A DNA stretch of 64,000 nucleotides from Trichosphaerium sp. ATCC 40318 (GCA_038496445.1 JALMLS010000577.1:868001-932000), one strand, 5' to 3'. Positions 3,915-42,078 are shown, numbered from the stretch's first letter. The notes: generated by a model not told the origin, from the letters alone. A program made the numbers and translations.

Positions 3915-5592
3915 TGACGATTGCATTATGCCATTGAATGGAGTTAAGGTCATTAACTTGAGTAATTTACCGAGAATAACAAGCGCAGGAATTCGTGCTA
4001 TCGGTTCTCATATACTCAATATTAACATGACAAACTGTAAAAGAATTTCGGGCAAAGTATTTAAAACCCTCAGTAACGCTGAAATAGTGTACCTTCCTGG
4101 AAATTCAAAAGTGTTTGACAGCCACTTGCAATTCCTGACATCTATAAAAAAGATTCACCTGAGCGGAATAAAAATTACCTCCGACTGTGCCAAGTTTCTA
4201 CCTTATGCTACTCGTGTTTCTCTGGACAACAAATTCAAGAAGAAGATAAAGAAAAGCTTTCCCTTTCACAACCAAGATGATGAGTTTCCACAAGGTTCAT
4301 ACAACCTAAGCCTGCCGGAAAACTACGTTCTCCCAGATTTTGTGTACGATAAAAATAGTGTAGAAACTTACGAGGCACAGAGAGTGAAATACGCACGTTT
4401 CCACCAAACAGCTGCAGCGAATATTTGCAACTCCAAACAATAAACTATTATACAGTTCTTCTTTTGTTCATTAAGACCTTCACTACCAACTATGTATTGT
4501 CGCATCTCAATGATATTGTATGCGAACTATGCCGGTTACAATGAAGTACAGAAGCCGAGTGAGCCTTTGTGAAACTAGATGCATTCTACTAGCTGCACGA
4601 GTAAAAGTATGTATTTGGTTGCTTATGTTGTCATATTTCAGGTAAAGTAGATAGGTATTAAAGGTATGATTTGTCATAAAGAACTTATTGGCTACTTTAA
4701 ATTGTCTTGTAAGTTTTTGTACTCCTTTAGAGTACAGTTATATCGGCCCTTTATACTTTGCTTTTCCCTCAAGAGCCAAGAGATGCTCTTGTTATTACAT
4801 TGTAACATGTATACTAGCAAGGAGGTTTAAACCTTTGTGACAGTATTCGTTCCTATCAAACATATTGTTAAAAAGCTGGAAAGCTTCATTAGGAAAAGTT
4901 GGTGCTACGAAGAACCACCGACAATACAAACAATTCCACCAGAGCTCCAAGTAGCCATTTTTGTTACCTATGTATGATTTTGAGGCCATGTACTTACCTT
5001 TAGTATTGCCACCAGACCAGCAAAGAACTTTGGTACATCGTTAATGTCTCTACCCTCTTTCTTATTCTTTTGTAACTCAGTATGAGTCTTCCGTAATTCT
5101 TGTTTGTTCTTGCATAATTCTTGGGTGTGTTGTTGCACCTTATCATTCACAGTCTCCATTTGTTTTAAAAGTAGTTGTAGATCAATCGATTCGTTTGCCA
5201 ATTGATCATTATGCCTGAGGCATTTTTGTTTTGGAGACTCATTCTCAGGGTCTAAACGATTTGAATAAGCAAAACGTTTTTCGTAAAGCTAGTTACTAGA
5301 ATTTGAACATAAAAAAAATTTGAAAAAAGTTGAAATCGCTTGAGGTTTCAAGTGCGAAGTTGTAAATAACAGTACGTACGTGTATAAGCGTCAACCAAAG
5401 CTTTTTATTCATTTTATACGCTTGGTGAATACGCATAGTCTTTGCCATCTGCTTCAGGACCTTCTATGTAGGTAGGTACATGCTCTAGCACCGGTAGTTC
5501 ATAAACTCGCAATACTCGGTTATCGCCCCAAACATGAAGGTGCATTTGTGGTGAAACACTGAAGTTCCTTGCCTGACGGCTATACCGAAATC

Positions 5593-12128: not shown

Positions 12129-13140
12129 TTACTCTTCAGGAGTTGCTTCCTCGCCTTCTTCTTCTTCCTTCTCTGCTTCTTCTTCTTCTGCGTCTGTGTC
12201 TTTGTTTGAAGCCCATAATGACAAGTTTTCTCTAAGCAATTGAAGAATTAGAGTTGTCTCTTTATAACTGTCATCTGTGAGTCTGTCCAAGTCGGAAATG
12301 GCGTCATCAAAGGCCTTTTTGGCAAGGGCACAAGCTTCATCCTGATTATTCAAAATCTCGTAGTAAAATACGCTAAAGTTCAAAACAAGGCCAAGTCGGA
12401 TAGGATCAGTTGGTGGCCTGTTACTTGCAGCTACCTTTACAGCTTCCTTGTAAGACTCAAGAGCCCTGTTAGCAGCATCTGTACGCTTATCGCCAGTGCT
12501 GAATTCGGCCATGTAACGAAGGTAGTCGCCCTTCATTTTGAGGTAAAATACTTTTGACTCGCTAGTTGTAGATTTGGCGATGAGCTCTTTGGTTAGAACG
12601 CCTAGAATATCGTTACAAATGTCCGTGAGCTCTGCTTCGATTTTTTCGCGGTATGCGTTTACTTTAGCAATCTTGGTAGCATTTTCATCTCTAGAGCAAA
12701 GGTGAGCGTGTATTACAAAAATAGTTGAAAACTAAAGCAGTTACATACCGCTCAACTTCTTTCACTTGAATTGATGAAACAATACGCCAAGCTGCGCGTC
12801 TTGCGCCTATTACGTTTTTGTATGCAACAGAGAACAAATTTCGCTCCTCAATTGACAGTTCAAAACCACCCAACGCTACTTTTTTAACGGCTTCGACCAT
12901 CTCTGGATAACGTTCCGCCTACATTTTGTTCGTTAAAAGCGTTTGTGAGCCAGTAAGTAACGATCACTTTTGATTTGCTGTTTGTGGTTGTTTTAGGCTC
13001 TAACTACGCGAAAAATCTTCAGGGAGCTCCAACATACAAACAACAAACAAAAAACAAGCGTAAACGTTGATTTGGCTAAAATTTGGCCGTACTTGTTCAG
13101 CTAGCTTTGCAATGTATACGTTTTCTTCCCTTGGATCCAT
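12129..13140 (-). CDS. 14-3-3 protein; multi-exon
   Basis: [65 protein letters not shown]. Confidence 0.98.
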
Positions 13141-16361: not shown

Positions 16362-18681
16362 TTAATCTTCCTTTGTTCGTAGTTCGTTGTTTAGTCTTTC
16401 TTCAAGACTATCAAGTAGTTTGTTCATTCTAGAAAGGTGTTGTTAGATTAAAAACAGCGTCTTTTTGTTTAGAACTTACCTCTCAGCGCTAGGGTCATTA
16501 GGAGGTACCTTTGCTCTAATTTTCTTCACATAGCGAAGAAATAGTCTGCAAACACTTTCAAAATTCTTGCAAGCGAGAATGAGCTACAACAAAAAAATGT
16601 CAATATTAATATTAATTCGATAAAACGCTCATTTATGAATTGAACGTGGTAATCATCTTACTTTTACAGCCTCTCCTTTTCTGATCTTTACTTCCCATCG
16701 AAATACGTCAATATTATTGTAACATACGTGAAGAGTAGAAATTGCCATAACCTATGAACATAATAAGCACGAAATGACTGAAATTCAGTTGATTGTAAAA
16801 TCTGTCGTTTATCATTCTTCGGGCTTTTGTTTGTTTTTTTTGAAATAAATCAGTACTTACTTGAGGAATGGCGCAAAATTTAAACACACTTGGTTCTTGT
16901 AGTATCTTCATATAATCTAGACTAGCCATAGCATGTTTTAATGCGTCTGTTACCATATGGTTGATAAGTTTCAATGCTTTCGTGTTGTTTTTCCATTCTT
17001 TAAAATCGCCAATAGCACCAGAGTATTGGCTCCTAAAAACGAAATTTTTTAGTGATATTCTTTCTTATCCAAAGATGAAAAAAATATAACTCAAACGTTG
17101 AGCCAAAATATTCGTTCTACGTACCAGATTTCTTCTGGGTAGAATATCCTAGGTGGAACCTCTAATACGTCCTCTAAGTAGTCACGTGTGATATTAGTCT
17201 TTTGTAGGAAGAGGCCCATGGAGTTACTCAAGTCTTTAAGTTCATCGATACGAGGATCTGATAATGATTAATAATGAAAATGCAATTCAAAAATACGCTT
17301 CAGGCAGTTTTGTATGAGAAGGGATGTTCGTACCTTCTAATCCTGATGCAGCGAATAATCCTGATAAACCGTGTCCGACGAGCCCAGCAACATAGTGGCA
17401 ATATTTCTCGTACTCAGGAATTGTTTTAACTTCTTTTGTCAAAAATTCTACACAAATAAGCAATTACCAAATGTGCATAACTCATACCAGCCATGCCGTA
17501 TCCCATTTTTTTGCAGATGTCTTCAATGATCAAGCGGTATCTGAACGAGATTAGTGTTGGTTTATACAAGTATTAATGCTTAGTACGACAAAAAAGAAGA
17601 GAAAAAAGAGCCATGTGTCAAATTGTGACACATTTTGTTTCAAAGAAACGTTCAAAAAAAAAAAGAACTTACTTTTCTTTTAGTTCCAAATGAGCGGCAG
17701 TCACTTTATTGAATTGTTTCAATAAATCTCTTTCTCTGTCATTTGTTCCATCTACAAAATATAAATATACTTCCCACTCCAATACATAAACGTGACATCA
17801 AAACAAAAAAAAAAAGAAAAAAAACATTCGTCCAAATACAAAATACTGGTGAGGCAGATGATCATCAAACTTGGCGCTATAGATCTTTTTGACGAAGCCA
17901 CTGGAAGAAAAGGTCTCATTTTTGTGAAAAGTAGCGTTGAATGTCAACTTACAAAGATGCTCAAAGTCTGCCATATTCCATTCACGATCATTTAGGTGCA
18001 AGTAGAATTGTTGTAGTTGCTCAATTTTTTCTTCAACTGGAGGACCCATGTCATCTTCAACAGAGTCCAAACCACGTAATACAAGGTAAAAAATACAAAC
18101 CTAAACGTTCCAAAATTAGTCATAGAGCCCTGTACACTAAGAAACGAAGTGTGGAGTGCTCTTCCAGGCAGTCAATGTGCACAGAAGCGCTTTTTTTCGT
18201 TTTGGAAGGTTGTTTGAGCACAAAAAAGGAGGTATGTAATGCTACGTACTGCTTCCCGCAATTCTGGGTGTAGTTCCAAGATGACGGCGTAAAAACTACG
18301 ACTAGTTTGCTTCAATTTGTCGTAACAGTATTTCATATCACTCGAAATGCCTGTAGGTATTTGTGGTAGTTTGCTAGCGCCAAATAAGTAAATTAGAGAA
18401 AAAAGTGCAAACTCGTACGTTGTAAATAAGAAAACAAACATATAGTACACCTCATCCAAGTGAAAAATGTAACCCAAGTCTTTCTTGAGTTTGGCAATTT
18501 TTACAGGCATACGTAATATATCTGCGTAAAAGCCCCACCATAACGCTAATCCAATGACCAAAGTAACAATGGTTGGTACAGATACGATATTGGTAGGGGT
18601 AGATTCAGTGGCTTCGTCAGTTGCTGCTGAAATAGCCGCAAAAACAAGCACTACCAACGCTATGCTTCGTGTTGGGAACAT
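16362..18681 (-). CDS. FDFT1: Squalene synthase (farnesyl-diphosphate farnesyltransferase); multi-exon
   Basis: [53 protein letters not shown]. Confidence 0.95.
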
Positions 18682-18858
18682 TGTTGAACAAAGTAACGCT
18701 AAGTGTCTGTTTAGCATGGCTTAAAAGGTTGAAAAGCTTCAGTGCACCTTCGAAGGCTCTGTCAAATGTTTGTGAGGCGTGTAATGCACACAAATCTAAG
18801 TCAAACATTCCTTACTTAAGAAAGTACATTTTTTCAGTACAAGCGGGGAAAACAAGCC

Positions 18859-31185: not shown

Positions 31186-32232
31186 AAAAAAATGTGAAAC
31201 TCAAATAGATATTTGAAGTGCTTGCTGGTATGGCTACGCGTAGTGGGTGTATCTGGCCACTTTAAAAAATTGTTCCAGCTTTTATTGTGAACAACTCTGT
31301 ATCACTACATAACGGTTTAAGGGGCTATTGCCTTAACACTTACGCAGGTTTAGGCCAAAAAGCGAGTAAAACTTCTTTCTTTTCTGACGAAGCACCTCTT
31401 CGTCAAAGGCACAAGTTTTTATACACAGCGAAGGGATCTCGCTCTCTCCCAAGTGGCAGCATTACATGAGAGTTACAAGTCATTGACAAACCGCAATAGC
31501 GGTTGTGTCCCGGTAGAAACTTTAGCAAACGCAAGGTACATCGTAGACAGTATACAGGAGACACTTGCACACGAAACGGAGACAGGAGATCACCAAAAGC
31601 TAACAGGTATAAAACAAGCCACAAGCAAGACCACAAGAAGGGAAGCCGACCTTAGGAGGACGTACAGGTACCGGGAAATCGTCAGAAAGCAGTTACAAGA
31701 CGCTAGCGTACACAAAAAGATTCAAATATTTAACCGACAAATGGGAAACACAACTAACCAACAACACACCGTAGAGTTATCCATACAACATAAACCAAAG
31801 GCTCGCAACCTTAAAGTGCGCTATAACCACCGAACAAAATACCAAACCACCGAAAACCGTAACAAAAAACATAAACCATTACATACCCACCCACCACACA
31901 GAAGGTCTCACGCGCATAGCGGAGCCAGTCCGTACTTTCTTAAAAAGAGCGTAACAACTCGTAAAATACCAAAACACACGGCAAAAAGCGTGAGCAACAA
32001 CGACACACAAATGAACAAAATAGATGGAAAAGAGCTCCAAATTAAGAAAAATGCGGAAATGAGTTCCGGCACAAAGAAAGCTGCCCATATGTACAAAAAT
32101 AAGCGTTGTGCGCAAATAAAAGCGTTTTCATACGCCAATTCCTACTACCTTGATAAAAGCTTTAGCCCATCAAAACCTGGCGCCAAAATTCAAAAACTTG
32201 CCATTTCCAAAACGCACAAACCAAGCTCCAAC

Positions 32233-33791
32233 ATGTCTAGAATCGACCTCACCAACCTCCCGCCTCTCCGTAACGCTACAAAGGCCACTCAACCACCGCC
32301 ACCGCCTGCTACAACAACACCACCTCCGGCACCGGCCCCCAACACCAACAGAATAGACGGGCACTTCAACCACACCAAGGCCTCCAAGTTTGTCGATGGA
32401 CCACAACGTGTGGACGGTGTGTACCCAATCTTTGTGGGTCTCACCGATGAAGACGTCTCTAGCAGACAAGTAGAGCTCTTTGTTCAAAACCTCCTTCAGA
32501 AAACAACCTACACATACTCATTCGAAGGCAGCATTGACTTTGTACCGTTCATCATCCTCACGCTAGAATGCGAGCAAGCAGCAAAGGACGCCGTCCGATT
32601 TATCTGGGAAGCAGAAGGTATTGCATACTACGCCGACCACTTACACCCAGCCACATGCCGTATACAAGTACATACAAATGGTGGACACAGACAAAACAAT
32701 AGCAACGGCCAACCACAGTACAACGTCAACTACACCCCTTGCGATCTCACAGCCGTCGAACTCTTGGAACAGCAGTATGCACGCATGAAAAACCGCAACG
32801 CCCAAGCAACTGCCATCACAGCCGGCTGGAAAAATAGATACAGAAAAATGGTTTTCTACTCCCACGAGCTACGTAACGACGCCGTATACGCCACTGGAAC
32901 TATAGGCACCAACGAACACCCTGTCATACTCACACCACCGACTAGACCTGACTATCCTTACACTCTAGCAGTCCACAGCCTTCCCAAACGCCTAGGTGTA
33001 CGCAAAGCAAGAGAACTAGTGTACAAATGCTGCGATAAACGCATACCGCGTAGAAACGTCTTGGTCGGCCGCTCAATCTACTGTGAAATATGCGCAGGAT
33101 ACGCCTACCTCACCTTCGACACGAAAGAAGAGCTTGAAGAAGAGATCAGACTAAGCAACTCACCAACCAACTACTTTGATGCCCTTATCAACAACCCGCC
33201 GCACTACTACGACGAAGATTGGAATTACCGCTCCAACTGCCCGTCAAAAGCGCCTAAAGACGAAAAAATTTCTGAGCTGACAAAGATGTACAAGAGACGG
33301 TTTGATGAGATCTCACGCACCGGTAACACGCATGAAGCCTACTTAGAACGCTTGCTCACTTGGTACCAGCCTTTTGCCTCACACTCGCGCCTTTCCCTTT
33401 ACTTTTACCCTTACCACTACCACAAGACTATAACTCACGCATACATAGTGTCGCATCGCTTGGATCGGAAATTGACGCTCTCAAAAACGTTGGCAAAGAT
33501 ATCAACACGCTCAAAAACAGAGTCTCTGAGATTGGCCAATACGTCCTCAAACACACCATCAGCAGCAAAATCGCCTCGGTCAACGCAACAAGAGACACCA
33601 CGAAACTTGAAGAAGCGTACGAAGAAATTAACAACAAGGCAACAAACCAAGTTCAATGCGCCACAGACGGTACCGGAGACATTCCAATGCCTGACGTCAA
33701 CTCGAGGCCAAGAAACAGCAACAGCAAGACCAACAGATCGCCAACCAAAACTGGAGTCAGCCCAACAAAGAAAAAACAACGCGCTAAATAA
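32233..33791 (+). CDS. LINE ORF1: Pro-rich N-terminus, RRM-like domain, coiled coil, basic tail; frame change at 33323-33426 (candidate intron)
   Basis: LAVHSL (RNP2-like) and GYAYLTF (RNP1-like); heptad segment SLGSEIDALKNVGKDINTLKNRVSEI lies in a different frame. Confidence 0.7.
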
Positions 33792-34513
33792 ACACTACAC
33801 ATGTAAGACCTCTGTAAATGGTCGGACATGCTCAAATAAACAAGCAGGGTCAAACCACCTCTTTTCGCCCACCTCCTCTTCTCCTTTTACCTATATTAAC
33901 ATAACATGAGCCTAAGTAAGATAGCCACTTCCTCCTGCGCAAAGTCAGACATGGGCAACCTGACTGAAGCGCCTCTTAGTCTTTCCAACATTCCTCTGGC
34001 TGAATCAGTCATTCCGTGCAACTGAAACCTTTCAAGCTACAACAAAAACGCCAACAACACCGTCTACACACCTGCCACCACGTCTTCCCTGCCAGTTAAC
34101 GCCATACAGCTCCTGTCCTTCAACGCGCAAGGAGGTTGGGAAAGTAACTCGGAAAACATATTCCACGAAGCAGAAAGACTACAAGCGGGTGTCATTATGA
34201 TACAAGAACCGCTCATAAGAGAAGAAGAGTACGAATGGCAAACGTACAAAAAGCTCAAAAATAAATATTACAATTACAACAACCTGCTGGATAAGCAACA
34301 ACGCATTAACAAGGCGTTCGCGCGTAGGAATATCAACTGGCGTAAAAAAGGAAGCAAAAAGACAAACGAGGAAATCGACGAATCGATCACCAGAGACAAA
34401 AGCAATCCGCGCTTTGATCCGAGACCGTCGGAAGGCACTATCACATTAGTACACAAAGCGCTACTAAAGAAGGTCATTAACACGTACAAAGACATCCACA
34501 GAAAATTCATCAT

Positions 34514-35442
34514 CAGGGCTGAAACTAAACAAGGCTTTGCCTTAAATATGAAGGCATTTTTTTAAAATCAGGCATTGATGGCAAAAATCAGGCATGCAAA
34601 AATGGCAATGCCTGATTTTGCAAAGGCAATGGCAGAAAAGGCAAAAATCAGGCATTGAAATAAGGCTTTGTTGGGCAATGCCTTAATTGTTGCAATGCCT
34701 TGTTTTTTTTAGGCAATGCCTGCCCTAGTTTTTTTATGCATTGCCAGCCTTAAATTTACAGGCACCAATTAGGCATTGGTTGTGTACACATTGTACATTA
34801 AGGATACATTGGTTTAAGGTAAGTTTCCACCACACCAACACTTCCTAAACATTTTTTTCCATTTACTACTGACGTTTTATATAGACAACGTCACCACACT
34901 CTTAGTATTTTATGGATTCTAACGAAACCACCGCCATTCGAACCGCAGCACCCAAATGCACCAATAACAGGAGTATAGGTACTTTAAACCATTTTTCCAG
35001 TCCGCGAAAATTATACCAATAATTTGTTAATTTTTTTTTCTAGCTAAAGGTTTTTTTTCACATGGAGGACATTGAAGTTTTTTGTGTTTTGTGTACTGTA
35101 CTTTAATAAATGAATCACTATTGTATGCCTATATAAAGCCTTGTTTTATGAGTATATGGTGCCTGAGTTATGCCCAAAAATTGAGGGCAAAAATGCCTTA
35201 TTGTTGCACTAAAAATGAGGCATTATTGAACCAACAATGCAGGCTATTTTAAGGCTAATTAGTGAACCAGTTGCTTGCTATTTGGCCCAAATATGAGGCT
35301 TCAAAGCCCAAAATTACAAGGCAATGCCTCATATTTACTCATTTTTTTTGGCAAAAACAAGGCAATTTGGTGAAAAATAAGGCTGTATTTGGTGGCAAAA
35401 AAATGGCTTTTGCAAAAAAAGCCTTATTTAGTTTCAGCCCTG
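34514..35442. mobile_element. Non-autonomous TIR element inside the APE domain, ~25-bp TIRs, AT duplication
   Basis: CAGGGCTGAAACTAAACAAGGCTTT...AAAGCCTTATTTAGTTTCAGCCCTG; many subterminal AGGC/GCCT motifs; removal restores RKFIITEM. Confidence 0.92.
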
Positions 35443-38400
35443 ATCACAGAAATGGCGCCCAACGAACGCACTATACTGTTCCTAGTTAATGTATACGCGC
35501 CATGCGGACACAAGGAAGGGGTCAAATTCTTCAACAGGTTGAACAACATCATCCAGACTAGGAAAACTAAATACAAAGGGAAGAGGCACGAAATAATTAT
35601 GGGAGGTGACTTCAACGCCATCTTAGACAAACAAAACGACCGATGGCTGCAAAAGAATGTCACACACGTTATGGCACCTAACCGAAACGCCAAACTGGGT
35701 GAGCTTATCACCAATCACAACCTTCTCTGCACATATAGGCACCTACACCCCACCAAAAAGGGTTACACAAGGTTCGGTATTAACAAAAAACTCAATAACT
35801 GAAATAAAAGCATATTCCGCTCTAAAACCCGTATCGACCTGTTCCTCTGCAAACGTTCACTGAAAAACAGGATCATGGCAGTGGACATCGTTAAGGATCT
35901 GCTCACCAGCAGCGACCACCTTCCTATAACACTTCTATATCAAGTCGAACTCACAGACACGCCAAACAACACTACCAAACCCATACAACCGCTGCCCAAC
36001 CTACGTACCAACCGACGACAAAAGGACAAACTCATGGCCGTCAAAGACATCACCTTCAGTGAAAGCACCATGCGTAAATTCGACGAGTTCATGACAAACG
36101 ACAAAATGAAGCCAGAAGAACTCATGAAAAACATCAACGACGAAGTTTATACAGAATGCAAGAAAAAGCTAGGTGCAAAGAGCAGAACAGGTAAACGAAA
36201 GATCAACGACCCAGTAGTGGTACAGCTGCGCACACTCAAACGGCAATTGATCAAGCTTGCACGGAAACTCAGCAAAGACAAAATACTAAACGGAAACAAG
36301 ATGGAAATCTGGGAAAAGCTTATCACCAAAACGAAGCGTGCCATTAAAAACGGTATAAGACTACCATCCAAAAGAAATATACGAGGGCTAAGGGCAAACC
36401 CAAACAAAAGCAAAATCAGGGAGCACCTCATCATTGCCATTACAGCAGTGTGCACCAAATTAGGAAACGCACTTACAAAAGCCAAACATAACCAAATCAA
36501 AGAAAGCATAGAACGTCTGATTGACAACTACCAAAACGAACCCAAGAAGTTTTTTGACAACCTGTTGGCCAAAACACAAAAGCAAAAAATGACAGTACTC
36601 ATTGATCCAAGCAGCAAGGCCTACGTAGTAGACGAACAAAGCAAACTAGACCTGCTGGTCGACACGTGGAGAGATATCCTACAAAAAGAAAGCCCTCAAC
36701 CTCACTATACACCATTGTGGATGGCAAAGAAACCGAACACTCCTATGGAGATGAACACTGAACTCATATCATACAATGAATACATTAAAGCAGTCAAAGA
36801 CACTGCAGAATGGAAACAACCAGGAGAAGACAGAATACCTGCAGAAATCATCAACAAATTGCCAGACGAATACCACGAGATACTACACAAGGTGTGTCAA
36901 AGATGTTACAAACTGGGAGAAATCCCTTCTGCGTGGCGCAAGTCCTACCTATACCTCATACACAAGCAAGGAACAAACCCTACTATACCAACCAACTACC
37001 GTCCTATAGCCCTGCTCTCAGTACAACACAAAATATACACACGCATCCTATACAACAGACTAGCGCAATACTTGGAGCAAAACGGACTACTGTCCAACCT
37101 ACAAAACGGATTTAGAAAAGAGCGCTCTACTATAGAGCATGTGAACACCCTCATCAACATCTTAGAAGACAACAAAGTAGTAAATGTTAACGGAGACATA
37201 CATCTCACATTCTTCGACTTGCGAAAAGCATTCGATTCAGTCGAACACTGGTCGATAGAACAAACCCTAAGATACTACAACGTACCAGAAGAAATGATCA
37301 CAGCGGTCAGAGGAACATACAACAACGGAAAGGCACAAATACTCACAGACGGAGGGCTGTCTAAAGAATTTGACATACTCAATGGAGTAAGGCAGGGAGA
37401 CATACTCTCACCGCTGCTATTTATCACAGTACTAAACCCTATCATTACACACATTGAAAAGCAATACAGAGGCTACACCTTCGCAAACAATGAACTACTC
37501 TCCATACCTCTTCTTGCCTACTGTGATGACCTGGTATTCATGTCCAACAACAAACAAGAAATGGAAAAAATGACAGCACAATTTGCAGAATACTGCGACT
37601 ACAATGGCATGTCAATCAACATCAAAAAGACTAAATACATGTCGTCGAATGACGCAGCAGGAGATCTCAGCGTCATGAGAGAAGGCAAAAACACTGAGGT
37701 TATCAAAAACATAGGACACAAAGCATCGTACAAGTACCTAGGGATAAAAATCAACACGGATCTAAACTGGAAAGATGACTTCACCCAAATGGCCAAGGCA
37801 TACAAGCGTAGACTGTCGATTATACAACACAGACGCATACCACTAGACGCGAGAAAAGCCATCATCAACAAAGTCATCAACCCAGTGCTGCAATATCATG
37901 CCAATTTCTATAAATTCCCGGATGACAAACTATACCATCTGCGCAACGCACTAGCCAAAAATATATTCTGGTCAGTCCCAATGACTTACTACACCAAACA
38001 ATCCAACCTATGGACAAAGACAAACGACGGAGGATTTGGCATGACACAGCCACTGACCGCAGCTACGGTCAGTTTCGTGGCCAACATGCACTGCACAGCC
38101 ATCAATGGCAAAAAGGGATCACTCAGCAGAAGCACCTCCAGACAACGCCTCCGAGACAACATATACCTCAACAAAATAGGTAGACGTAACCTCATCGAAA
38201 CGCTGAGAATGCTACCCACAGTAGCCGTACACGAATACGATGACGAACGCATTACTGCATATGTGAAAATGTTGAACAATCTGGGTATTAACCCAATCAA
38301 CCAAGAAGACGCACAAGAACACATACTAGACTCACTCACCTACTCTGAACGGAAACGATTCCAGAAAACCAACATAAGTGAAAACACCAAATGGACGGAC

Positions 38401-38751
38401 ATAGCCAACAACAGAAAACTGAAGAAAGCAGAAAAACTCCTGGGACCCTTAGCTAACATCTCAGAAGAACAGTACAAGCTGCTCAAGGACATACTCTCCA
38501 AAGGTAACTCACACAGACTCAAGAAACATCTACGAAGAACACTACACCCAGCACTGCCGGTATATAAACAAAACAGTGCACATACGGACGCGCATAACAC
38601 AATCAACATATGGACCGACGGCTCCAAAAAAGCCAGTATGGAAGGGGCTGGACTAGGAGTGTACTTTGACGACAACAGTATTGCGGATATTACGTCAAGA
38701 ACGGTCACTGGCGACACGGTCGATGCAGCAGAGCTGGAAGCGGCGGTCATA

Positions 38752-40801
38752 CAGGTCTAAAATTTTCGAGCTGTTTTTATGGTAGATACCATGGATTTGT
38801 GGTATAATTATACCATCGATTACAATTTTATACCACAAATTCCAGTATAATATACCATAAATCAAAGGATTTATACCATAAAACAGCCAAATTATACCAT
38901 AAATATGCAGTAGAAAGTGCGAATTTATACCATATTTTTTCACCTGAAAAAATGCAATATATGGTATAATTCTACCATAAAACATGGTATAAAACACAAT
39001 ATAATACCACAAAGTCTGGTATATTATACCTTAAAACTTGGTAGATTATACCACAAAACCAGGTGTATTATACCGTGTAAAAACTGTTCTAATAATAAAA
39101 CCACATTTATTAATACATTTTTTTGTTTACATCCGTGACTTTTGGTTTTGTCCATATCCTCTTTTGTGGTAGTTGACACATCAAATAACCTTCAAAAAAA
39201 ATATTGTACTTGCTGTAAGTGCATCGAATGGACATAGCATGAAAACTAGAAGAAGAATTAGTGAAGGCTTGATGCACAAAATAAATAGTCGTACAAAAAT
39301 TGCTGTTTTGTTGTGGTGGCAGCACTGGGAGTAACAAATGACCTGTGCGGTGGAGCCAAACCAAGGCTAAAACAAAGAAATTAAAATAACTGCCAACTTC
39401 ATCGGAAACAAGTTCTAGCAGAATTGTACCTGTTAGCTAACACATCTTGGTTTTTTTTTTATCATCTATCTAGCTTGGTTAAAACCTATGGCAAGCGGCT
39501 TCAAAACAACTACTTTTAGCGTACCTTGTGTTGTGCGGGCGATAAACTGGACAAGACTTAGTTTTGTGCTCTGACTTAGCCAATTGGTTTACAATATCAC
39601 TCGTAAGGTCAACGCATGGGTGTGAAGCCTAAATGCTATCTGTTCTGGCAAATGCGGGCGTTTAGTAGGGAAAAATTCAAAAAAATCCAAAAAAATCCAA
39701 AAAAAACCAAAAAAATCAAAAAATGGGTAGACTCTGAAACAAATTGGCCTTATAGCACTATTCACGCGTTTTAACATGCATTGGAGCATATATCAAAAAT
39801 GTCAAAAAAAAATAAATAATTTTGCTCCTGATTTGGTAAATGAGGCTGTATGGCGTTGATTGAGTGTAAAAATGCCTATGGAGGGGAGAAAAAAATGAGA
39901 GCCGGAGAAAAAAACCTCCAATTGGAGGTTTTTTGCGAATGGGCATTTTTCGAGCGCTAAATGCGTTTTTGGTGTGTCTACCACTGTAGCGTTCTAACAT
40001 GGGTACGCGGAGTGGTTTCTTCCTCAAATACCATTAATCGGAGAAAGTTGGCCAATTTATCCCTAAAACGCCCGTAATTGGGGCGCGTTACCAGATTTCT
40101 CTCTTAAAACTGTTTTTCACACATTTATATGCCAATTATGTTCAACAACGGCTACTGTCAAAGCATTGTGTGGTATGGCATTTGTGTAGGTCCATATGCT
40201 ATTAAATCAAGTGCAGACCAAGTGAGCTTTGACTAACTTATACTTATACAGTATAATACCACGGTATAATACCACATTTTATGGTATAATTATATGGTAT
40301 AATGCACGGTATACAATACTGTAAAATACAGTATAATACCATGGTATAATACTGTGTTTTATGGTATAATTATATGGTATAATGCATGTATAATATACTT
40401 TAAAATGCAGTATAATACCATGGTATAGTACCATGTTTTATGGTATAATTATATGGTATAATGCATGGTATAATATACTGTAAAATGTGGTATAATACCA
40501 TGGTATAATACTGTGTTTTATGGTATAATTATATGGTATAATGCATGGTATAATATACTTTAAAATGCAGTATAATACCATGGTATAGTACCATGTTTTA
40601 TGGTATAATTATATTCTATAAATTGAGATATGGTATAAACATGGTATAATGGCTGTTATACCATTTGTCCAAAAAACATGGTATTATACCATATTTTATG
40701 GTATAATTATATGGTATAATTATGGATTATACTGAGCTTGTACCATAAAAGGTGATTATACCATAAAATATGGTATTATACCATGATAATTTTCAGACCT
40801 G
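38752..40801. mobile_element. Non-autonomous TIR element inside RNase H, TA duplication (Tc1/mariner/pogo-like ends)
   Basis: TA-CAGGTCTAAAATT...AATTTTCAGACCTG-TA; TATACCA/TGGTATA arrays at both ends; removal restores AELEAAVIALKTV. Confidence 0.92.
40249..40615. repeat. ~80-bp minisatellite, about 4.5 copies, built from TGGTATAAT motifs
   Basis: Unit starts at about 40249, 40329, 40408, 40488, 40568. Confidence 0.9.
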
Positions 40802-42078
40802 TAGCACTCAAAACAGTAACATCCAACACCAATGTTAACCTCTTCACAGACTCCACATACGTCATACATTGCGCAACGAAATGGACCAGGTTGCCGCACA
40901 ACAAACAAATCAACTCGCCAAACAGAGCCATGATCATGGAGCTAATAGACACCATCGAAAACCGGCGCAAGCAAAACGTGTACACCAGAATACACAAAGT
41001 ACCATCACACGTACCTGAAAAACTCAAAAAACTGGAAACATCGCCTAGACCAAACGCAAAAATACACATAGAACTCAGTACGCTCAGGAAGGAATTCGGA
41101 GAAGACATCAAATGGATATTAGACGGAAACGAAAAGGCAGACAACTTGGCTAAAAATGGACTAACGGCGCACAAACCTGACCCACCGAAGAGAAGAGATA
41201 CCAAACATTGCGCATTGTACACTTTCAATGAAACCCTGATTGAAGGTAACATTAGGAAACAAATACACAGCAGGATATACAAAAAGGAACTAGAAAAATA
41301 CAAATCAGATTACCCGGACACGATCAACCAGGACATCAGCATATCCACGGCACTCAACAAAAACCCGATAGAGAACGATGCACTCATCAGATTCCAACAC
41401 AAGGCCAGATGTGGCAAATTATGTGGTAGATATGAAATGAACAAACGAATCGGCAAACACAACAAGAAAGAATTCAACGACAAATACAACGAAATCACAT
41501 GCCTTTTATGTGGGCACGAAAAGGACGACACGCAACACATACTCAACGAGTGCAGGGCAACGCAAAAGAAACGAGACAAAATCAAGACACGAACAACGAA
41601 CAAAATACGAAGGGCATTTAACCGTATGGCAAGGAAAAAGAAAAACAGAGAGCTCATGCAAGGAAACTGGATAGACGGCAGAACTTTTATCCCAACCAAG
41701 GTAGTAATAGCGTGTCTACAAGCAGGATACAAAACGAAATACACACACGACAAGCTCACCAACATACAAAAGAACATGACAAGGAAGTATAGGAAGATAT
41801 ACATGAAGAGATGCAAGGCAACCGACATGGAATGGAAGAAACAATATGCAGCTGCGGCAGCGGCACTCCACCACCCACCCATAGACTAAACCTGAAGTTC
41901 ATGCACAGGTTTGGTCACTGGTCTGAGACCGGCCCGCTTCTGACAATGAGTCTCAGAACGGCAGCGCATACGCGCCGGCTTTAAGCGAGTTCCGTATATA
42001 CATGGACCCGGTCGACCCAGCGTTGAAAAACTGGGACCAGACAGAAACAAACAAACAAACAAAACAAAGCTGATCGAT

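Follow-up and report, generated by a model that had tools for sequence, protein, structure and literature searches.

The 64,000-nucleotide stretch of Trichosphaerium sp. ATCC 40318 DNA analysed here (GCA_038496445.1, JALMLS010000577.1:868001-932000; hereafter the window) comes from a 70.3-Mb genome with many short introns and carries, on its plus strand at approximately 31369-42069, a single, decaying copy of a long interspersed nuclear element (LINE) of the apurinic endonuclease-like (APE)/reverse transcriptase (RT)/RNase H type. The hallmarks of a LINE are present, namely a non-LTR-type RT domain, a first open reading frame (ORF1, 31741-33791) located 5′ of a second (ORF2, from 33906), a 3′ tail that ends at about 42069, and no long terminal repeats (LTRs). 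ORF2 is broken at four places, by two insertions and by in-frame TGA codons at 34023 and 35800, and the C-terminal part of ORF1 lies in another frame than the rest. An earlier interpretation made from the sequence alone (the sequence-only reading) had taken the ORF1 frame change and the two stop codons as three lesions, each removable by a GT-AG intron, in a LINE that was either intron-bearing or domesticated. Comparison with related elements makes it probable, instead, that this is a decaying LINE copy in which the two stop codons are nonsense mutations and the switch of frame in ORF1 comes from a short spliceosomal intron in phase 2, at 33363-33448. Below, frame F denotes codons beginning at positions equal to 1 mod 3, and removal of the first of the three introns proposed earlier joins F to positions 0 mod 3 (F-1). 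The features of the element are as follows.

31369-31612, plus strand: 5′ leader, conserved and untranslated, with predicted hairpins, recognised by its DNA likeness to the relative C376
31741-33362, plus strand: ORF1 exon 1 in frame F, starting at the first in-frame ATG and ending at the putative donor, with two possible RNA recognition motif (RRM)-like modules
33323-33426, plus strand: intron 1 as proposed earlier, borders rejected
33363-33448, plus strand: putative ORF1 intron, phase 2, 86 nt
33449-33791, plus strand: ORF1 exon 2, frame F-1, with a helical/heptad stretch, an acidic patch and a basic tail; stop TAA at 33789-33791
33792-33909, plus strand: spacer, open in frame F only; the frame-F stop TGA at 33907-33909 overlaps the ORF2 ATG (ATGA)
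33906-34514, plus strand: start of ORF2 (ATG at 33906), with the N-terminal extension and the first part of the APE domain; in-frame TGA at 34023-34025
33916-34095, plus strand: intron 2 as proposed earlier, rejected; ORF2 N-terminal extension, conserved as coding sequence, with one nonsense mutation
34512-35444, strand not assigned: insertion resembling a miniature inverted-repeat transposable element (MITE), splitting the APE domain
35440-38757, plus strand: ORF2, remainder of the APE domain followed by the RT; in-frame TGA at 35800-35802
35772-35810, plus strand: intron 3 as proposed earlier, rejected; APE coding sequence between the Y-T and R-I-D motifs with one nonsense mutation
38758-40800, strand not assigned: second insertion, about 2 kb, in the C-terminal region of ORF2
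40801-41889, plus strand: ORF2 C-terminus with RNase H and a Cys/His motif; stop TAA at 41887-41889
41890-42069, plus strand: 3′ untranslated region with a terminal (AAAC)n tail, read directly

A search of the genome for close DNA siblings of the window copy found none, returning only two 91-nt matches at 75%, and a protein search of the genome yielded a set of diverged LINE families. Six elements were excised for comparison (C376, C80, C75, C510, C269 and C431), and C334, a near relative of C75, was added from loci already obtained. C376 is intact, with 832 codons in ORF1 and 1748 in ORF2, counted from stop to stop, and an RT 62% identical to that of the window element. C80 and C75 are likewise intact, C510 and C269 are identical over the compared ORF1-ORF2 junction region, and C431 and C506 are degenerate copies. 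Over the last 323 codons of exon 1, protein identity of the window element to five relatives was 54, 41, 32, 20 and 21%. Outside the genome, a word-based protein search and a metagenome pattern scan for ORF1 relatives were both empty, and a full hidden Markov model (HMM) search with the ORF1 alignment returned one relative, P0121 (E = 3.9e-36), on metagenome contig L061 (3593-7792; public contig ENA ERZ25072490, 1.96x coverage). As this ORF1 relative carries the same segment at its frame switch, the lineage is not limited to the assembly from which the window was taken.

An ORF1 that runs in frame F and continues as a conserved C-terminal piece in frame F-1 was found in the window, C376, C510 (and the identical C269), C80, C75 and C334. 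Homology of exon 2 among the six families is weak, and selection on it was visible in closer comparisons. The last 14 codons of exon 2 show six base differences between the window and C376. Five are synonymous third positions of F-1, and these same changes would all alter the amino acid in frame F. Between C75 and C334, third positions of F account for 55 of the 66 differences in exon 1 and third positions of F-1 for 66 of the 95 differences in exon 2. The 58 nt 3′ of the GT in these two elements are 64% identical, with differences distributed 8/5/8 and no periodicity, and the spacer is 54% identical, again without periodicity, indicating that coding constraint switches frame across a short unconstrained segment. 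The substitution pattern thus shows the C-terminal F-1 exon to be under purifying selection. Since the frame switch is kept in intact elements of several diverged families, it is, on these comparisons, a built-in feature of the lineage and not a product of decay.

At the switch itself, a segment with intron-like ends lies at the same place in eight copies that represent seven distinct elements (the window, five other genomic sequences and L061). The segments and their borders are listed below.

Window, 33363-33448, plus strand: 86 nt, TG/GTACCA...CTCAC...CATAG/T
C376, contig positions 10066-10118: 53 nt, GTACCA...TCTAG
C510, contig positions 4737-4798, minus strand: 62 nt, GTATGC...CACAG
C269, contig positions 29583-29644, minus strand: 62 nt, borders as in C510
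C80, contig positions 8656-8744: 89 nt, GTACGA...TGTAG
C75, contig positions 88479-88540, minus strand: 62 nt, GCAAGT...TTTAG
C334, contig positions 12481-12542: 62 nt, GCAAGT...TTTAG
L061: 62 nt, phase 2, CT/GTACGT...CTCAC...TTTGCAG/G, joining F to a long F-1 frame

The window segment is 66% pyrimidine and 9% G. Across the seven elements, the segments measure 53-89 nt, have lengths that are all 2 mod 3, and lie in phase 2 without exception. G makes up 6-11% and pyrimidines 61-76%, every acceptor is YAG, and a branch-like CTYAC motif precedes the acceptor by 11-20 nt. In the alignment of six sequences, exon 1 ends at the same column throughout, about 45-50 residues past a conserved W/F-N/D-Y motif. 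As a yardstick, nine host introns were derived from the 14-3-3 (12129-13140, minus strand) and squalene synthase (16760-18720, minus strand) genes of the window. These are 40-199 nt long, with the donors GTAAGT (three), GTACGT (two), GTACGG, GTACGA, GTATGT and GTATGA. All nine combine a GTA donor, G at +5 and C or T before the acceptor AG, and GTAC donors occur in four. The donors of the LINE segments (GTACCA twice, GTATGC, GTACGA, GCAAGT twice and GTACGT) are of the same types. Judged by its ends, donor, pyrimidine tract, branch-like motif, length and the frame its removal restores, the segment would qualify as a U2-type intron.

A scan for intron-likeness over about 41 kb of coding sequence from the six genomic elements returned the frame-switch site in each element plus one extra match in C80; in L061, its one match was the frame-switch segment. 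The extra C80 match (L037, 5211-5259) has GTA...YAG ends, is pyrimidine-rich with a branch-like motif, and lies in ORF1 upstream of the frame switch. Other placements at the C75/C334 site were tried and dropped. A donor at local position 5404 of C75 is missing in C334, and the next 57 nt show frame-F periodicity. A 58-nt GT-AG segment in both elements, being out of phase, would terminate ORF1 two codons on, and an antizyme-like +1 shift at that stop was abandoned for the in-phase GCAAGT donor located 4 nt upstream.

The three introns of the sequence-only reading all exist as stretches with the properties claimed for them, being in phase and removing the lesions. The first (33323-33426, 104 nt, GTAACA...CACAAG) joins the ORF1 frame to the next frame when removed, the second (33916-34095, 180 nt, GTAAGA...GCCAG) contains the TGA at 34023-34025, and the third (35772-35810, 39 nt, GTTCGG...AAAAG) contains the TGA at 35800-35802. 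Counted within the right length class, however, nine, four and four in-phase GT..AG pairs would remove lesions 1, 2 and 3, respectively, and leave an open frame, so that the existence of such stretches is not beyond chance. Searches with tblastn using the intact ORF2 of C376, C80 and C75 were colinear through both 33916-34095 and 35772-35810. The former is the N-terminal extension of ORF2, conserved as protein, and the peptide spanning the 34023 stop reads P-C-D-W-D-L in C376, P-C-N-W-N-L in C510 and P-C-N-stop-N-L in the window. In the latter, C376 reads R-F-G-V-N-K-Q-A-N-K-K, where the window has R-F-G-I-N-K-K-L-N-N-stop-N-K. These 11 residues of C376 match window residues on either side of the 35800 stop, and C80 and C75 encode similar lengths; coding sequence is found here in four relative families in all. 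Because intact relatives translate both stretches, the alignments identify the two TGA codons as ordinary nonsense mutations in coding sequence and not as marks of introns 2 and 3. Intron 2 was the only one of the three with host-like signals; the GTT donor and AAG acceptor of the 39-nt intron 3 occur in none of the nine host introns. The sequence-only reading had itself named CGA or TGG (Trp) instead of TGA in sibling copies, together with an unbroken ORF1 frame and no spliced reads, as the signature of ordinary decay. Alignment of the relatives revealed Trp at 34023, and introns 2 and 3 are refuted by the criterion of that reading. For ORF1 the reading was right in kind, since this LINE lineage does appear to have an ORF1 intron that is inherited through retrotransposition.

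For intron 1, the idea of an intron in ORF1 thus stands, while its borders do not. The donor GT at 33323 has no counterpart at the homologous place in C376 or C510, and the first 13 codons of the proposed intron are conserved coding sequence that includes Y-L-E-R/A-L. This Y-L-E-x-L peptide, which an intron at 33323-33426 would delete, is kept in three families through synonymous codon changes (different Leu and Arg codons). These borders lack G at +5 and have an AAG acceptor, unlike all nine host introns. Between the competing borders, the in-phase combinations are 33323/33426 and 33363/33448 only. The latter, the only pair in phase when the zone 3′ of the 33323 donor was searched, is common to the relatives and is the placement that the comparison supports. 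Domestication, the other suggestion made for this copy, is unsupported, given its two transposon insertions and two stops and relatives that are typical multi-family LINEs. Three GT-AG introns in an intron-bearing or domesticated LINE are therefore very improbable, and that all three lesions, the ORF1 frame change included, are ordinary decay of a dead copy is hardly credible. Decay would fit the insertions and nonsense codons, but several diverged families have this frame change in intact members, as does an independent metagenome contig, and selection is visible on either side of it.

Two further explanations accept the frame switch as functional but dispense with a local intron. Programmed -1 ribosomal frameshifting, or another form of recoding, could carry ribosomes from F to F-1 near an AGT-A/G-T site; the -1 relation of the frames is kept in all families, and there is a precedent in the HeT-A gag, for which a frameshift is reportedly needed (PMC5009743). 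No X_XXY_YYZ heptamer lies in the allowed zone of the window, C376, C510, C75 or C334, however, and C80 has two chance matches. F-1 also opens only 5 nt (C75, C334) or 17 nt (C376) before the acceptor, and frameshifting would place in the main product a segment that between C75 and C334 has lost periodicity and is 64% identical. It would also leave the GT/GC...YAG ends, the pyrimidine tract and the branch-like motif unexplained, and we consider it unlikely. The F-1 frame could alternatively be a separate small gene, expressed, for instance, from a subgenomic RNA that joins a donor far upstream, possibly where the leader ends, to the same acceptor; the local donors would then be coincidental. 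The acceptor and the F-1 frame are indeed the best-supported parts of the arrangement, in three families a conserved Trp-Tyr pair coincides with the local donor, GTA follows the conserved end of the leader in the window and C376, and an ATG lies directly 3′ of the acceptor in C376 and C510. That ATG is missing in the window, C80, C75, C334 and L061, and each of the seven elements has a host-type donor that is local and in phase, among them GCAAGT and GTACGT donors without the Trp-Tyr pair. With conservation and periodicity in C75 and C334, moreover, falling exactly at the local donor, a separate gene appears quite improbable.

If the segment is an intron, its removal is not the only way in which the region can be read. 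In all seven genomic copies (six sequences), frame F is open through the segment, exon 2 and the spacer, running 123 to 376 codons beyond the donor, whereas 6-36 stops interrupt the other off-frame along this span. In the window, C376 and C510, the frame-F stop overlaps the ORF2 start (ATGA), and in C75, C334 and C80 it lies about 8 to 26 nt downstream of the ORF2 ATG, as read from printed contexts. The spliced frame ends 31-553 nt upstream of the ORF2 start, and the stop/start arrangement that could couple the two ORFs is therefore available to the unspliced frame only. In shuffle tests, the openness of frame F gave P < 2e-4 (C75, C334) and 0.002 (C80) for the spacers and P values of 0.002-0.08 in four families for the overlap with exon 2. 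As the spacer is not conserved as protein, selection acts on its openness alone.

These observations suggest a mechanism in which spliced RNA would yield the full ORF1 protein, exon 2 adding the helical stretch, acidic patch and basic tail, and unspliced RNA would be read in frame F to the ORF2 start codon, where ORF2 would be translated by termination-reinitiation. The ORF2 protein, made only from unspliced RNA, would act on its own template, and we propose that the intron is for this reason copied into every new insertion; all eight copies examined retain the segment. The retained ORF1 intron may therefore serve as a switch, splicing completing ORF1 and non-splicing keeping the frame open to the ORF2 start, with ORF2 coming only from intron-containing RNA. 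We offer this as a tentative model, somewhat short of an even chance. The sequence-only reading had suggested that such an element mobilises unspliced RNA while translating spliced RNA; the idea agrees with the present findings insofar as splicing can be deduced from them.

Several points weigh against an intron, or against its proposed role. Splicing of the segment is an inference, as is its link to ORF2 translation, which is drawn from the open frames and the stop/start overlap. The intron-likeness criteria were fixed after the candidates had been seen, so the scan gauges how unusual the segments are and is not an unbiased test. The donors of the window and C376 do not have the G at +5 that is present in all nine host introns, and the in-phase donor of C75 and C334 is a GC, with a GT four bases downstream that leads to an out-of-frame product. 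In the window, C376 and C510, the donor falls on the conserved Trp-Tyr codon pair, which by itself yields GGTAY, so that what is conserved in these three donors could be the protein. The word-based protein search, the metagenome pattern scan and the HMM search, in none of which the joined exons were a query, returned no relative that lacks the intron and has a continuous frame. In L061, a contig of 1.96x coverage, the stop of frame F falls about 200 nt upstream of the called ORF2 start.

The domain content of the element was consistent with the LINE assignment. In ORF2, the Pfam match to RVT_1 is strong (E = 2.5e-36; 125.8 bits against a cut-off of 29.6), and the match to Exo_endo_phos_2 on the piece 3′ of the MITE-like insertion (E = 1.4e-4, 22.2 bits) is below its cut-off of 27.4, the domain being split by the insertion and a stop. 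RNase_H (E = 5e-4, 20.6 bits) is also below cut-off (25.8). The best database relatives are proteins with RVT_1 plus RNase_H or Exo_endo_phos, and the closest carry PF00075; the sub-cut-off RNase_H match and these PF00075 relatives make the element a candidate for likeness to the RNase H-bearing (I/Tad/R1-like) clades of LINEs. The ORF2 relatives P0001-P0003 were considered as sharers of the ORF1 arrangement and rejected, their contigs having unrelated ORF1s. Two metagenome LINEs, at L057 3776-9996 and L058 5996-11492, are the nearest relatives of ORF2 outside the genome, at about 30% identity. Their APE and RT parts are in separate frames that overlap, which could reflect either a further frame switch or assembly errors. 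An AlphaFold2 model of ORF1 has a mean predicted local distance difference test (pLDDT) score of 53, with two beta-alpha-beta-beta-alpha modules at pLDDT 60-86, and suggests with low confidence that ORF1 carries two RRM-like modules and a helix running into the junction.

Alignment to the intact C376 ORF2 also delimited the insertions. Positions 33906-34514 are colinear with residues 37-239, and the alignment to relatives picks up again at 35440, after the MITE-like element, with 63% identity to C376 over 35440-38757. It breaks at 38757 (residue 1341) and restarts at 40801 (residue 1339), where the C-terminus (40801-41889) is 58% identical. The MITE-like element at 34512-35444 has 27-nt terminal inverted repeats that are 96% complementary, is about 930 nt long and contains many internal AGGCATTGCC-type palindromes. 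A related MITE copy seems to break the ORF1 end of the C431 LINE (L039/L043, element-strand local positions of about 4100-5200). The second insertion (38758-40800) is repetitive, with odd reading frames rich in Tyr, Ile, Trp and Gly. At the other end of the element, the 5′ leader is identical to that of C376 (L034, 4049-4294) in about 200 of 247 DNA alignment columns, far above the conservation of the ORFs, which share only 40-62% protein identity with C376, and it may be a promoter or an RNA element. Several hairpins are predicted in it, one with a compensatory pair, and its conservation stops in both copies at ...AACAGG, followed by GTA. A ribozyme was considered and dropped, Rfam giving no family match for the leader of either the window or C376.

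Because introns are normally lost on retrotransposition, the retention of one by seven diverged members of a LINE family calls for a mechanism. The switch, if true, would explain how a spliceosomal intron persists in an element copied through RNA: splicing would decide between an RNA-binding protein and a polymerase, and copying would be confined to the unspliced form. Known ways of balancing ORF1 and ORF2 include frameshifting, stop/start coupling and 2A peptides, to which splicing would then be added. The window copy itself is dead, and mutations account for two of the three introns proposed in it. A literature search found no description of a LINE with a conserved ORF1 intron.

The closest parallel for intron retention is in the Penelope-like elements, whose genomic copies are described as keeping introns despite passage through RNA (PMC4209133, PMC3846280). 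The likeness is that of a retroelement retaining a spliceosomal intron. Penelope-like elements have a telomerase-like RT, a GIY-YIG endonuclease and a single ORF, whereas the window element belongs to the APE/RT/RNase H type, Pfam giving an APE-type endonuclease, RVT_1 and RNase H after a separate ORF1, and, unlike theirs, its putative intron sits in ORF1 and shifts the reading frame. Human L1 RNA is described as being spliced by the host, giving rise to spliced integrated retrotransposed elements (SpIREs) (PMC5860796), and the present element would resemble L1 as a LINE whose RNA is a host splicing substrate. The spliced forms of L1 are defective by-products and dead insertions, whereas here all examined copies keep the segment and no intron-less insertion turned up in the searches described above. 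In the HeT-A gag of Drosophila, also a LINE, a frameshift is reported as required (PMC5009743). The window element shares with it a conserved C-terminal part of ORF1/gag in another frame; the HeT-A change is attributed to ribosomal frameshifting, whereas here there is no slippery site but a segment with splice-site ends and without coding constraint.

With respect to the ORF1-ORF2 junction, SART1 offers a likeness, its two ORFs reportedly being coupled by stop/start (UAAUG) according to Kojima et al. in 2005. The overlap of the ORF1-frame stop with the ORF2 start (ATGA; window, C376, C510) similarly suggests termination-reinitiation, but, unlike in SART1, only the unspliced frame here reaches the ORF2 start. 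The LTR retrotransposons copia and BARE make Gag-only spliced RNAs, and unspliced RNA is the form that is replicated. In human papillomavirus 18 (HPV18), the E6*I splice within the first ORF is described as setting the protein output of a polycistronic RNA (PMC6513837). The likeness in these cases is that splicing within or 3′ of the first ORF determines the protein made and that the unspliced RNA is replicated. They belong to other element classes, in which splicing removes or disrupts an ORF, whereas in the LINE described here it would complete ORF1 and uncouple ORF2.

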